From contig OZ249436.1 in NCBI GenBank assembly GCA_965235115.1, forward strand, positions 13,640,001 to 13,704,000: a stretch of 64,000 nucleotides of DNA. Reading direction: 5' to 3'. Shown in pieces: positions 23,107 to 62,523 of the stretch (the stretch's first letter is position 1; each line of letters begins with the position of its first letter). This DNA is from Laetmonice hystrix. Lineage: Eukaryota. Below the pieces are notes generated by a model, which ran no database searches, was not told where the DNA came from, and saw nothing but the letters and a program-made list of their open reading frames with translations. The position numbers were made by a program, and so were the translations under genes.

Positions 23107-24175
23107 TTACATTCGTATCTACCTGAGGGTGTCGTATCCTGATAACGATCAGTAAATAGTATCAGACCACGGGTAGGGGGGGGGGGGGGTACCCATGAGT
23201 TACATTCGTATCTACCTGAGGGTGTCGTATCCTGATAACGATTAGTACATAGTATCAGACCACAGCCCGGTATGGTACCCATGAGTTACATTCGTATCTA
23301 CCTGAGGGTGTCGTATTCTGATAACGATCAGTACATATGATCAGACCACAGCCCGGTATGGTACCCATGAGTTACATTCGTATCTACCTGAGGGTGTCGT
23401 ATCCTGATAACGATCAGTACATAGTATCAGACCACAGCCCGGTATGGTACCCATGAATTACATTCGTATCTACCTGAGGGTGTCGTATCCTGATAACGAT
23501 CAGTACATAGTATCAGACCACAGCCCGGTATGGTACCCATGAATTACATTCGTATCTACCTGAGGGTGTCGTATCCTGATAACGATCAGTACATAGTATC
23601 AGACCACAGCCCGGTATGGTACCCATGAGTTACATTCGTATCTACCTGAGGGTGTCGTATCCTGATAACGATCAGTACATATGATCAGACCACAGTCCGG
23701 TATGGTACCCATGAGTTACATTCGTATCTACCTGAGGGTGTCGTATCCTGATAACGATCAGTACATAGTATCAGACCACAGCCCGGTATGGTACCCATGA
23801 GTTACATTCGTATCTACCTGAGGGTGTCGTATCCTGATAACGATCAGTACATAGTATCAGACCACATCCCGGTATGGTACCCATGAATTACATTCGTATC
23901 TACCTGAGGGTGTCGTATCCTGATAACGATCAGTACATAGTATCAGACCACAGCCCGGTATGGTACCCATGAGTTACATTCGTATCTACCTGAGGGTATC
24001 GTATCCTGATAACGATCAGTACATAGAATCAGACCACGGGTAGGGAGGGTACCCATGAGTTACATTAGTATCTATCTTAGGATACCGTATCCTGATAGCT
24101 ATCAGTAGGCCTACATATAGTATCAGACCACGGACAGGGATGATATCAACGAGTTACATTCGTATATCTGACGAT
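23107..24175. repeat. Minisatellite with 86-nt unit, about 12 copies
   Basis: Unit tacattcgtatctacctgagggtgtcgtatcctgataacgatcagtacatagtatcagaccacagcccggtatggtacccatgagt. Confidence 0.96.
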
Positions 24176-24524: not shown

Positions 24525-25092
24525 CCTGCCTCCCCACCGACCTATCTACCTACCCACCCACCTATCTACCTCCCCACCCACCTATCTACCTACCCACCGA
24601 CCTATCTACCTACCCACCCACCTATCTACCTGCCCACCGACCTATCTCCCCACCCACCGACCTATCTACCTGCCCACCGACCTATCTACCTACCCACCGA
24701 CCTATCTACCTACCCACCGACCTATCTCCCCACCCACCGACCTATCTACCTACCCACCCACCTATCTACCTACCCACCCACCTATCTACCTCCCCACCGA
24801 CCTATCTACCTCCCCACCGACCTATTTACCTACCCACCTACCTCCCCACCCACCTATCTACCTGCCCACCGACCTATCTACCTGTCCACCCACCTATCTA
24901 CCTACCCACCCACCTATCTACCTCCCCACCCACCTATCTACCTCCCCACCCACCTATCTACCTCCCCACCCACCTATCTACCTGTCCACCCACCTATCTA
25001 CCTACCCACCCGCCTGCCTATCTACCTCCCCACCCACCTATCTACCTCCCCACCCACCTATCTACCTACCCACCCACCCACCTACCCACCCA
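24525..25092. repeat. C-rich low-complexity repeat (cccacc[c/g]acctatctacct, units of about 20 nt with 4-nt subunits)
   Basis: Direct reading. It produces the spurious Pro/Thr-rich ORFs 24358-25134 and 24425-25108. Confidence 0.93.
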
Positions 25093-58356: not shown

Positions 58357-58435
58357 TCCGTGAAGTTGTTTGACCTTCGTACGAGTAATGCTTCTTGAAA
58401 TTAATCATACTTTTTCATGTGGATTTCTGTCGAGT

Positions 58436-58630
58436 TTTCTCTGTGTCAACGGTGTGTGTCATAGAAACATTATTAACACATTCATGCCGTACATGATTTT
58501 CTCTCTGTGAACGGTGTGTGTCATAGAAACATTATTATCACATTTATGCCGTACATGATATTCTCTCTGTGAACGGTGTGTGTCATAGAAACATTATTAT
58601 TAAATTCATGCCGTGCATGATTTTCTCTTC
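58436..58630. repeat. Tandem repeat with 62-nt unit, 3 copies, running into the exon 2 acceptor
   Basis: aacggtgtgtgtcatagaaacattatt recurs at 58448, 58510 and 58572. Confidence 0.9.
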
Positions 58631-58632
58631 AG

Positions 58633-58778
58633 AAACTCACCAAGGGCCGCACGAAAAGCGCCTGCTGGCGGATATATTCAAGGACGGCCGATACAATACA
58701 TTGGAGAGGCCCGTAGCGAATGAGACCGACGCTTTGTCAGTGTATTTTGGACTTGTTCTTCAACAGATCATCGACGTG
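58633..58778 (+). CDS. CHRNA7-like: nAChR alpha7-like subunit exon 2 ((E)THQGPHEKRLLADIFKDGRYNTLERPVANETDALSVYFGLVLQQIIDV)
   Basis: Acceptor ttttctcttcag, donor GACGTG|gtaaag. The translation carries the GPHEKRLL..YN.LERPVAN...FGL.LQQIIDV signature of invertebrate alpha7-group subunits, with the same exon boundaries and phases as in that family. Confidence 0.96.
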
Positions 58779-60119
58779 GTAAAGTTGACCATTAAATTAC
58801 CTTATATTTGCCTTCGTCTCTTTTCGCATGCACCGTAGTTTGCCAAAGACAATCATCGTCATAAAGTAAGGAGGAAGTCTTTATGGCCGTAAGATCTGGA
58901 TGATAATGATTGTTGAGATTGGTCCGATTGATTTCAGTAACAGTAGGTAAAATTTTTATTTTTTGAGAATAATCTAGTAATGCTCATTAGATGATAGGTA
59001 AAGATATCATTTGGTTTTAGAATGTTTCATGTAATGTCTTGGCTGATTCAATCTAAGTAATAATCGTGTAAATTGTACTATGATATGCCAGTGACATAAT
59101 TTGATCGATTTACTTACTGTATGTAGATATTGAACGTGTACAATTTGTGATGTTGATGCCAAAGTTTTGACAAATGTATGTTTTTCTTTGCCCATGTTTG
59201 TGAGAGGGATAGCGAGTGTTCACCCTAACAAGTACTAATCAGCTATACCTTTGCCGTACGGTTTCTCAACCCCAACAACGTCCTTACAATGCTTAAACCC
59301 AACTACAGAAATTTAAATTGTTCAAGGTTCTGGTTCAAAATTTGATTTTAAAATGCAGGATGAGTTGTAATCGAACCGAGCTCATGTCCGCACATTTTGG
59401 GTCCCTACTTTGAATTCGAATAAGCGTAATCTTTCGCAGTAAAGATGCCTTAAGGATAGTGTTTGGCACAGTCTTTTGAATAATTCTTCAATTTTGATGT
59501 GTGTTCAGTTGCTAACATTGTTTGTATGTCTGCCTGCCATTTGAGTAGAATCTAAGAAATTATGTAGATGGTATTGCTTTGCGGTGATTTCCTTGTTGCC
59601 TACCATACAGAGGTTTTAACAATTTAACATCTTAAAAGAAAAGGTCCTTTCACAGCGAACATTGCTTATATGCAGCTTCTTGCTTAGTTATTTGGAAATT
59701 ATCGAACATGTTCTTAGGATGAGACAGTCCATACAACAAACAATGCTGTTCACGACGGCATGCTGTAAGAAGTAAAAACGGCTTAGACCACGGAGAATTA
59801 ATGAGATTATGATGACGTTGAGTGTATGGTTGTGACTCGGCCGAGTTTGAGTGGTGGTTCAGCTCTCTAATACACCATACGCACACACATTTGTCCCTGC
59901 TATTTAAATGCAAATCCTATAACGAAGTTCATTTTTATTTGGATTCTTGACGGAATTGTTGATTGTCAAGATAGTAATGAAGTTGGATTTGAGACTTTAG
60001 GAACATGCTTTTGACCAATATCTCGTTAGTCGTGAAGTTTTTAGCTCTTGGATTTGACAAGTGACGTTTACTGTGTTATTTTCTGCCACGAACTAATATT
60101 TGTTTTCTATTTTTCCCAG

Positions 60120-60164
60120 GATGAAAAGAACCAAATATTAACATCTAATATATGGTTGAATATG
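60120..60164 (+). CDS. CHRNA7-like: nAChR alpha7-like exon 3a (DEKNQILTSNIWLNM)
   Basis: 45-nt phase 0-0 exon with acceptor ttttctatttttcccag and donor gtaagt. It matches the conserved 15-aa exon 3 (DEKNQ.L.TN.WL..) that contains the loop D tryptophan. Confidence 0.95.
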
Positions 60165-60267
60165 GTAAGTTAACAAGGCTTGTTTCACGTGGCAGGTCAC
60201 GTGATGCGTAACACTCACGTGATTTGTTGCGTTTTATAATAACATATTCTTTCTTTCTTCCCCACAG

Positions 60268-60312
60268 GATGAAAAGAATCAAATCATAAACACAAATATC
60301 TGGTTAAATTTG
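60268..60312 (+). CDS. CHRNA7-like: nAChR alpha7-like exon 3b (DEKNQIINTNIWLNL), tandem duplicate and putative mutually exclusive alternative
   Basis: Second 45-nt phase 0-0 exon 103 nt downstream of 3a, with intact acceptor ttctttctttcttccccacag and donor gtaagt. It differs from 3a at 4 amino acids and many synonymous positions. Confidence 0.93.
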
Positions 60313-60588
60313 GTAAGTCAGAAACCTTAATGAGAAGGAAATGAGGATAAAACAAGTTGACGAGTGAACTAACTCTTTAAAAAAACAATGAAATCGAAAT
60401 AACAGGAACCAGCCAGCAAAAAATATGTTAGCCGCATAAACTTAACGACGAATCTACCTAGTCCCCGAATGATACCGTGGCCTTTTATCCAATCTAAACA
60501 CAGTTTAGAGTCATTAGAGGCTTAAACAGCACCAGTTCTAATACATAAAATGATAAAAGGTGACAAAAGCAAAATAATTAGCGTAATA

Positions 60589-60606
60589 ATAGCGCCCTCT
60601 TGCCAA
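60589..60606 (-). promoter_or_regulatory. CTCF-like motif (TGGCAAGAGGGCGCTA on the minus strand), about 280 nt downstream of exon 3b
   Basis: Close match to the CTCF consensus. Motif match only. Confidence 0.4.
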
Positions 60607-62359
60607 AAATGGTCTGTGACCTAGCGTTAAATAACAAAACTGTAACTATAAACTTTCAACTTATTTTATCCTCGATTGATTTAAATAAATGTGTATCAAC
60701 TTATTTTATCCTCTGTGTACCTTTATTTCGATAGAGAAAGGGACCCCTGTCCCATACAGCTTTCCTCGGTCTCAGGGTGGTGTACACGTCCTCTTTGTAA
60801 TGTATTTAAGTATGCATTTTTCAATGATTTAAGCGGGCGACGTAAGGCATATATTATGAAGGACAGGGTGTTTGACTTCTGAAGGTGCCTGATGTGATCA
60901 ATGTCATCTTTTCAGCCTGTGATTCCCTGGTCCCTGGTTATGTTCGACTCTAATAACCCAAGAGTAGATTTCAGCGTAACAGTTATTAGAACTATAATTT
61001 GCTGTCGACCATATTTTAAACGAAACATCTTGAGAGACGGTCCAGAATGTGTTTATATTCAAACACGTTCAGGGTATGCCATTATTTCCGCATTTCAACG
61101 AAATTGCGAAAATCTCTGTAACAGGGACATCCATTTAGTGGTGTTAACTTCTTATGACCACAACATCCCTCAAGCACCTTTGATTCCATGTCTCAGTATG
61201 GTCTTTCAGCTATATCTTCCTTCTGCTTCATATTAGAATATAAGTGGCAGCAGTATTTAATGGCCGACACGGTAACTATAGTTACATAGGTTGAGGAAAG
61301 AGGCCGACTATAGGATAAGACGCCTAACGCCTCGTGTGGAGGATGCCGCTGCACGTATTTGAGGTGTTTAGGATTTAAGAGGGCTTTACCTTGTGCACTA
61401 CCACCCTGGGTAGAGCGGACTATGGAAAGCCTAAAAGATGCATGCCAAACCTTGACTGCATACCCCCAATAAATATGCCATGCATGGAATAATCCCTATC
61501 CCCGTTTAAATGAAAGTAACCCTTTATCGTATACTGCATATTTTTTTCAAATCACGTCTAGTATGAACAAAATAATCAGGACCACAATATATAGCATGAC
61601 CTGTGAGATGAAGTATACTGTGCATATTGCCTTTGTCGGTATTTATGGTTTCTTGTTGAAGGTAAACCTCAGTAAATCACTTTTATTCGTTGGTCAGTAC
61701 CCAAATAGGCGGCACATTATTGTTTGCCTTTAGTATCTCACGTCAGTTTGTATATTATTTTCGGGCAAGGTAATACTTCTTTCTGTGTTATCTATGTTTG
61801 ACCCCGGAAGGAGTTGATAATACAATTGATCCGGTGATTAAGATAACAACCGTTTTGGGCATAAAATATGTAATATAGGATGATATAGAAGAAAGGCAAT
61901 AATGAACCCACTGAGTGATGTTACAGAAATTAAAACGTCATAACCATGAGATTCGTGGCCGCCTAAAGACAAATGGCTGCCGCCCGTCTTTTTTGCTTTT
62001 CTTCATGTTGTGGCGTGCCGTAAACCATTTCAATTAACTTAATTTTTTCATAATGGGAATTGCATTTTCTCTTATTAATATATGTCTTTTTACTGGTGTT
62101 TGTATCATCGGGTTCTATATGTTGCATATAAGTATCCAATTACCTTTGTAATCATTTAAACAATTCCTTACCAAAACCATTTTTCAAAGAAATCCTTTTC
62201 ATTCCTGATTCATGTTGATTTTAATTTTTATTAAACATCAGAGATGCCTCTATATCGCTTATCTACATGCAACTGGGTAAAAATTAAAGGGATGTAAATA
62301 ATATATCCATAAACAAACTCAAAGTAGGCGACCCACGTCTCAGTTATATTTGCCATGTT

Positions 62360-62523
62360 TATGAATATGTCAGCGTATTTCGCCTGGCAGTGGCCGCCAA
62401 TATGAATATGTCAGCGTATTTCGCCTGGCAGTGGCCGCCAATATGAATATGTCAGCGTATTTCGCCTGGCAGTGGCCGCCAATATCAATATGTCAGCATA
62501 TTTCGATTGGCAGTGGCTGCAAT
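62360..62523. repeat. Tandem repeat with 41-nt unit, 4 copies
   Basis: Unit tatgaatatgtcagcgtatttcgcctggcagtggccgccaa. Confidence 0.93.

Follow-up and report, generated by a model that had tools for sequence, protein, structure and literature searches.

Two tandem versions of exon 3 in an annelid alpha7/alpha6-type nicotinic receptor gene and a conserved intronic inverted repeat beside them

The receptor gene and its tandem exons

The window, that is, the whole 64,000-nucleotide stretch of Laetmonice hystrix DNA analyzed here (G000:C1:13640001-13704000), contains exon 2 and two tandem copies of exon 3, designated 3a and 3b, of a gene encoding a nicotinic acetylcholine receptor (nAChR) subunit. 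The gene continues beyond the window as far as exon 9; coordinates above 64000 extend the window numbering, and addition of 13,640,000 converts a coordinate to the position on contig C1. The exons and the intron between the two exon 3 copies are as follows:

58633..58778, plus strand: exon 2, 146 nt, entered in phase 1 and left in phase 0, ...THQGPHEKRLLADIFKDGRYNTLERPVANETDALSVYFGLVLQQIIDV, ending ...QQIIDV
60120..60164, plus strand: exon 3a, 45 nt, phase 0-0, DEKNQILTSNIWLNM
60165..60267, plus strand: intron between 3a and 3b, 103 nt
60268..60312, plus strand: exon 3b, 45 nt, phase 0-0, DEKNQIINTNIWLNL
67619-67728: exon 4, 110 nt
68183-68436: exon 5, 254 nt, with the Cys-loop
70211-70405: exon 6a, 195 nt, tandem copy (L002:6211-6405 = G000:C1:13710211-13710405)
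70489-70683: exon 6b, 195 nt, tandem copy (L002:6489-6683 = G000:C1:13710489-13710683)
72454-72540: exon 7, 87 nt, TM2
75624-75733: exon 8, 110 nt
75925-76371: exon 9, the last coding exon, ending at the stop codon

The original prediction was of two intact 45-nt phase 0-0 exons lying 103 nt apart, with strong splice sites, in an alpha7-like nAChR gene of an apparently non-insect host. Both exons are read directly in the window, with a pyrimidine tract and CAG on the 5' side and GTAAGT, a consensus donor, on the 3' side. Exon 2, whose splice sites were likewise read directly (acceptor cag, donor gtaaag), joins in frame to either copy, and exon 4 follows (AWNDYNLRWN...). The segment encoded by 3a comprises the beta1-beta2 loop and the beta2 strand with the loop D tryptophan. 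The two copies differ at 10 of 45 bases (78% nucleotide identity); four codons carry a synonymous difference and four a changed residue, the latter being the foreseen ILTS versus IINT and M versus L differences between isoforms. The intron flanks of 3a and 3b cannot be aligned with each other. On both strands of the 64-kb window, 3a and 3b are the sole instances of AG followed by a 45-nt open frame and GTAAGT, and a tblastn search revealed no third exon 3 copy within 124 kb. Independent contigs, assembled from three DNA runs of one sample, were collinear with the window across 58599-62389 and showed no indel or variant in 3a, 3b or the intervening intron; the pair is therefore not an assembly artefact.

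Tandem repeats were also observed in the window. At 58435-58628, a 62-nt unit is repeated 3.1 times and ends four bases 5' of the exon 2 acceptor; the DNA contigs fragment here and word depth is raised, so that further copies of the unit probably exist elsewhere in the genome. An 86-nt unit is present in 10.7 copies of 95% identity at 23188-24107, and a 20-nt unit in 13.6 copies at 24529-24800.

With 3a or 3b joined to 6a or 6b, all four combinations remain open over 463 residues beyond the signal-peptide exon; a scan of the window for exon 1, as a signal-peptide exon with a phase-1 donor, found none. The family assignment of the original prediction, an alpha7-like nAChR alpha subunit, was borne out by every hallmark inspected. 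Pfam PF02931 (ligand-binding) matches exons 2 and 5, with exon 2 corresponding to Neur_chan_LBD positions 1-40, and PF02932 (transmembrane) matches exons 6a, 6b and 9. The translation contains the C-x13-C Cys-loop (CKIDITWFPFDDQKC), the vicinal cysteines of loop C that mark the alpha type (YDCC in 6a, YECC in 6b), the loop D tryptophan (NIWL in both 3a and 3b) and the GEK ring before TM2 (GEKITC in 6a, GEKISL in 6b).

Databases were queried with exon 5 and then with the proteins that exon 5 matched. The closest full-length proteins were the alpha-7-like subunits of the nemerteans Lineus longissimus (73.7% identity) and Tubulanus polymorphus (72%), and the best match of the Lineus orthologue among solved structures was human alpha7 (E 1.5e-153). 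The Capitella locus, read exon by exon, was closer than the nemerteans, with 87% identity in exon 5; the nearest paralogue in the Laetmonice genome showed 63% identity in this exon. A maximum likelihood tree of 25 proteins recovered annelid, nemertean, mollusc and ecdysozoan clades and followed the species tree. It grouped the Laetmonice gene with Capitella and two contigs, L011 and L015, in an annelid clade (support 96/91), with nemerteans, Lingula and molluscs beside it, and with arthropods, including Drosophila alpha6, plus a tardigrade on the other side. This placement indicates that the organism is an annelid, and the expectation of a non-insect host thus held. Judged from these comparisons, the gene is this annelid's single orthologue of the alpha6-type subunits of arthropods and of vertebrate alpha7.

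The exon 3 and exon 6 pairs in related genes

The same 3a/3b pair was found in the same order at orthologous loci of Capitella, the annelid contig L011, the nemerteans Tubulanus and Lineus, and the snail Haliotis:

Capitella: upstream DEKNQILTTNIWLNL, downstream DEKNQILQTNIWLRL, intron 258 nt
Tubulanus: upstream ...IISSNVWLDM, downstream ...IINTNVWLDL, intron 308 nt
Lineus: upstream ...IIATNVWLNL, downstream ...IIHTNIWLNL, intron 103 nt
Haliotis: upstream EERKQILHSNIWLKV, downstream DEKNQIIHTNLWLQL, intron 1.5 kb
L011 (annelid contig): upstream copy 46 nt with a 1-nt insertion, downstream copy intact and of 3b type, intron 231 nt

At the loci checked, every copy begins after AG and ends before a GT donor, which reads GTGAG in Capitella and GTAAGT in the others. 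The two copies belong to recognizable types: at positions 8-9, 3a carries T/S-S where 3b carries N-T, and the last residue is M in 3a as against L in 3b; the Tubulanus copies are split alike. The downstream copy was of the II[NHS]TN type in Tubulanus, Lineus, Haliotis and L011. Lingula and the annelid-clade contig L015 have a single exon 3, of 3b type, from which it follows that a copy can be lost. Judged from these loci, the pair predates the split between annelids and nemerteans, and it probably predates their split from molluscs. Purifying selection on both copies had been proposed from the window, and the intact pairs of Capitella, Tubulanus, Lineus and Haliotis agree with it; the exception is 3a of L011 (L011:4247-4292), where an extra G after CAG lengthens the exon to 46 nt and shifts the frame. 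The extra G may come from misassembly of this one contig, or the exon may be disabled.

Exon 3b is identical to its Lineus counterpart (L018:63606-63650) at 44 of 45 nucleotides. All 13 codons for conserved residues are the same, compared with 30-59% in the other exons of this gene pair, which suggests constraint on the RNA sequence itself.

The closeness of the Laetmonice copies (103 nt) and their 78% nucleotide identity could point to a recent duplication, private to this lineage and without conserved function. This reading is contradicted by the orthologous loci, and the gene tree gives no hint of paralogy. The unalignable flanks, the type-specific residues common to relatives (with the same split in Tubulanus) and the conservation of two adjoining intronic elements, E1 and E2 (described below), between annelids and nemerteans also speak against it, and we attach hardly any probability to it.

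Alternatively, one copy could be a dead relic, a pseudo-exon that is never spliced in, the gene then making a single exon 3 form. The insertion in 3a of a close relative (L011) and the presence of the 3b type alone in Lingula and L015 fit such a scenario. We nevertheless regard it as quite improbable. In both Laetmonice copies the frame is open, and the invariant DEKNQ...NxWL core and the AG/GTAAGT boundaries are kept despite unalignable flanks; Capitella, Tubulanus, Lineus and Haliotis retain the two types in unchanged order; each copy is used in RefSeq models of relatives; the sampled DNA carries no variants in either exon; and the L011 insertion could itself be an error of assembly in one contig.

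The manner in which two functional copies would be used is indicated by RefSeq, whose isoforms are gene models computed by automatic annotation. Isoforms of equal length that differ only in exon 3 are present in Lineus, Tubulanus, Haliotis asinina, H. rufescens, Aplysia and Biomphalaria. The sets of Lineus (five isoforms), Tubulanus (two), Haliotis, Aplysia and Biomphalaria contain no form with both copies; one further Haliotis model skips both. Inclusion of both copies (+45 nt) or of neither keeps the reading frame, so that nonsense-mediated decay cannot enforce exclusivity.

Joint inclusion, producing a subunit with a doubled beta1-beta2/beta2 segment, deserves consideration as a common outcome. 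The frame would be kept, a 103-nt intron is in principle long enough for splicing, and there is a precedent in the Bombyx alpha6 type III transcript, which contains both exon 3 copies (PMC1919356). Database models with both copies exist for Capitella, Macrobrachium, Limulus, a tick and several insects. The Capitella model, however, includes the two copies of the loop C/TM1 exon as well, which would double a membrane helix, and it therefore looks like an annotation read-through. Given also that the RefSeq sets of Lineus, Tubulanus, Haliotis, Aplysia and Biomphalaria hold no double form, common joint inclusion appears improbable. We consider it likely, with good confidence, that exons 3a and 3b are two functional alternative versions in an annelid alpha7/alpha6-type gene, one of them being expected per mRNA. 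Either/or use in Laetmonice itself is supported indirectly, by the conserved pair and by the RefSeq isoforms of relatives.

Models that join both or all tandem copies were seen in Capitella (CAPTEDRAFT_221893, P0195; two exon 3 and two exon 6 copies), Owenia (P0203), Armadillidium (P0045), Macrobrachium (P0224), Limulus (P0401), Haemaphysalis (P0371) and P0023, the last with four TM2 exons. Most of these are probably annotation read-throughs.

A second tandem pair lies about 10 kb downstream of 3a/3b, outside the window. Exons 6a and 6b, 83 nt apart and 73% identical in protein, differ immediately before TM1 (RRRK versus RRRT), all along TM1 and at the pore start (GEKITC versus GEKISL). The two types, 6a upstream of 6b, recur in L011, L012/L013, Capitella, Owenia, Tubulanus and Lineus, and the swap is annotated by RefSeq in Lineus. 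Two copies of the loop C/TM1 exon are present in Lingula as well, and one in Haliotis. In the exon tree, annelid and nemertean 6a copies group together in one clade (91-94% support); independent origins of 6a in the two groups were 8-13 log-likelihood units worse, a difference at which the AU test does not reject them (p 0.15-0.20). The isopod Armadillidium has an exon 6 pair of its own that does not group with 6a. The 6a-6b intron, 83 nt in Laetmonice and 58-60 nt in two relatives, may be short enough for splice-site crowding to prevent joining of the two copies. We would expect 6a and 6b to act as a second either/or pair, affecting loop C, TM1 and the cytoplasmic mouth of the pore, and together with 3a/3b to allow up to four subunits. 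The changes in TM1 and at pore positions 2' and 3', on its cytoplasmic end, suggest differences in conductance, permeability or assembly between the exon 6 versions.

In insect alpha6, it is the TM2 exon that comes in two or three versions (PMC1919356). The TM2 exon is single in Laetmonice, and its protein sequence is 100% conserved among annelids and nemerteans. The second multiplied exon thus differs between lineages (loop C/TM1 in annelids, nemerteans and Lingula, TM2 in arthropods), which indicates that the gene was diversified repeatedly by the same means.

Two side observations concern the loop C/TM1 exon. Its upstream copy in Lingula anatina (L021:9686-9883) is intact, with AG/GTAGGT, and is missing from the annotated protein. 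GCATG, the core of the Rbfox-type motif, occurs within about 60 nt upstream of 6a at three annelid loci (L011:8270-8285, L020:6408-6420 and, in window numbering, 70150-70165).

Intronic elements beside exons 3a and 3b

The intron downstream of exon 3b contains three short elements:

60343..60359, plus strand: E1, 17 nt, GAGGATAAAACAAGTTG, starting 31 nt after the 3b donor
60657..60673, plus strand: E2 copy 1, 17 nt, CAACTTATTTTATCCTC
60697..60713, plus strand: E2 copy 2, 17 nt, the same sequence as copy 1, 40 nt further downstream

E1 is identical in Lineus and has one change each in Tubulanus and L011, and in these four loci, Laetmonice included, it is positioned 23-49 nt after 3b. E2 likewise recurs in Lineus, Tubulanus and L011, at a distance of 398-573 nt from 3b; with Laetmonice included, the range is 345-573 nt. 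The surrounding intron is otherwise unalignable, including the 300-500 nt between the elements. Neither element is present in Haliotis or in the loci that carry one exon 3, those of Lingula and L015; in Capitella, an E2-like element alone occurs. Elsewhere in the 627-Mb genome, the motif does not occur above chance.

E2 is the reverse complement of E1 except at the central position, which is mismatched in all four loci (C.A in Laetmonice and Lineus, U.C in Tubulanus). In a duplex scan, E1 and E2 were each other's best partner (-20 to -24 kcal/mol), and RNAalifold returned E1:E2 as the sole consensus helix across the region, with 16 pairs and 62 of 64 cells paired. Across the four loci, no compensatory change was found in E1:E2, and one U-A pair is changed to U.G. 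Duplex scans from exon 2 to E2 revealed no partner near 3a, as a selector, that was consistent across species, E1 alone being strong and conserved, and long windows around exon 3a, scanned for a stem, gave uninformative duplex scores (z between -2.1 and +1.6). The E1/E2 inverted repeat is probably an RNA stem, which would influence how the 3b donor is used or which of 3a and 3b is chosen. Such a stem beside the 3b donor would be the most likely regulatory element of the pair.

The elements might instead act as DNA, as three copies of a 17-bp protein-binding site in an intronic enhancer or as the ends of an old mobile element. The motif contains GATAA and AACAAG, the pairing shows no compensatory change, the central mismatch stays a mismatch, and E2 is doubled in Laetmonice, all of which this reading would accommodate. 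A mobile-element origin, however, is ruled out by the uniqueness of the motif in the genome: at chance level elsewhere in 627 Mb, it is not a repeat family. Further points against action as DNA are that the inverted orientation and the 23-49 nt position are kept in four loci despite an unalignable spacer, and that the elements are missing from both single-exon-3 loci. We hold action as DNA to be possible, at appreciably less than an even chance, and favor the RNA stem, which makes the E1:E2 repeat a specific candidate for the control of exon choice.

The intron between 3a and 3b was also inspected for structure. Three TCACGTG palindromes lie within 38 nt (60185-60222), and from them a hairpin of 20 bp is predicted at 60187-60232; the intron fold has an energy of -27.0 kcal/mol (z -3.4). 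The sequence GGTCACGTG recurs in the same intron of L011 and is the only part of the hairpin region shared with relatives. As a conserved feature the hairpin was rejected, being absent in L011, Capitella and Tubulanus. An 8-nt complement between CTGCCACG upstream of 3a and CGTGGCAG in the 3a-3b intron is likewise unconserved in relatives.

Predicted effects, origin and known systems

Exon 3 corresponds to what we take to be residues 44-58 in human alpha7 numbering, with W55 as the loop D tryptophan. Subunits made with 3a or 3b would share an identical beta1-beta2 gating loop, DEKNQ (44-48), and the loop D tryptophan, and would differ at beta2-strand positions 50-52 and 58 (LTS...M versus INT...L). 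The four differing positions lie on the complementary face of the acetylcholine site, and in a homomeric receptor every binding interface would change. We infer that the difference between 3a and 3b has a functional effect, and an altered agonist or toxin pharmacology, or altered gating, is a plausible one.

The exon 3 pair is present in arthropods as well: in insects, and in the prawn Macrobrachium, the horseshoe crab Limulus and the tick Haemaphysalis, where models read through both copies. Arthropod copies are of type I[LV]T[TS]N upstream and L[LI][IV]TN downstream. The upstream type is nearly the same in arthropods, annelids and vertebrate alpha7, whereas the downstream types differ between the protostome branches. 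Mean identities over the 15 residues were 10.75 for a-a and 10.45 for b-b, against 8.85 and 11.15 for the cross comparisons. These values fail to separate like from unlike copies, so that either one ancient duplication or two parallel ones could account for them. The original prediction had posed a deep protostome-wide switch against a convergent duplication; depth is confirmed as far back as before the annelid-nemertean split, and 15 residues are too few to decide whether the pair is homologous with that of arthropods. It is a tentative and rather doubtful proposal that the switch arose once, before the arthropod-lophotrochozoan split, and is set in annelids and nemerteans by the intronic RNA stem E1:E2. 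If a single origin were true, the pair would be among the oldest either/or exon pairs of any neurotransmitter receptor.

The exon 3 switch of insects appears to extend to the orthologous gene of annelids, nemerteans and gastropods, and crustaceans and chelicerates also have the pair. Variation on the complementary face of the acetylcholine site would accordingly be long-standing across protostomes and not an insect peculiarity. The full-text literature searched held no published description of nAChR exon 3a/3b splicing outside insects and no paper describing the lophotrochozoan RefSeq isoform models. A survey of lophotrochozoan nAChRs does not treat splicing, and a 2026 mite paper calls the presence of alternative splicing an open question. 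The switch thus appears to be visible in automatic RefSeq annotation and undescribed in the literature searched.

The RefSeq entries concerned, named neuronal acetylcholine receptor subunit alpha-7-like or acr-16-like, are orthologues of the Laetmonice gene, those of nemerteans being 72-74% identical over the full length. Their models swap the same exon 3, and Lineus also swaps the loop C/TM1 exon. Unlike Laetmonice, Lineus has a third pair, at exon 4, and Haliotis lacks both the exon 6 pair and E1/E2. The two Lineus exon 4 copies (L018:70550-70659 and 70712-70821) lie about 50 nt apart and are alternative in RefSeq (isoform X4).

Competing RNA pairings control mutually exclusive splicing in Dscam exon 6, 14-3-3 xi and human ATE1. 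The Laetmonice locus resembles these systems in having conserved complementary intronic elements beside tandem alternative exons. It differs in that one pairing was found, with both arms in Laetmonice downstream of the cluster, with no selector for each variant exon and no covariation.

Insect alpha6 is the target of the spinosyn insecticides. Mutually exclusive exons in Drosophila Dalpha6 were reportedly described by Grauso et al. in 2002. The Laetmonice gene belongs to the same orthology group and has the same 45-nt DEKNQ...WL exon in two tandem copies, the upstream one being of the canonical ILT[TS]N type, and exon 4 is almost identical (AWNDYNLRWNETEYGG in Laetmonice, EWNDYNLRWNETEYGG in Drosophila alpha6). 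In contrast to the insect gene, where exons 3a/3b and 8a/8b/8c are mutually exclusive (Jin et al. 2007, PMC1919356), the Laetmonice gene is that of an annelid, its downstream exon 3 copy has II[NH]TN rather than the arthropod LL[IV]TN, and the second cluster is the loop C/TM1 exon and not the TM2 exon, which is single in Laetmonice.

Vertebrate CHRNA7 differs from the Laetmonice gene in its single exon 3 and single loop C/TM1 exon, and its sequence DEKNQVLTTNIWLQM is resembled by the 3a type. Human CHRNA7 exons 3, 4, 7, 8 and 9, which we take to be 45, 110, 195, 87 and 110 nt long, match the Laetmonice exons in size.
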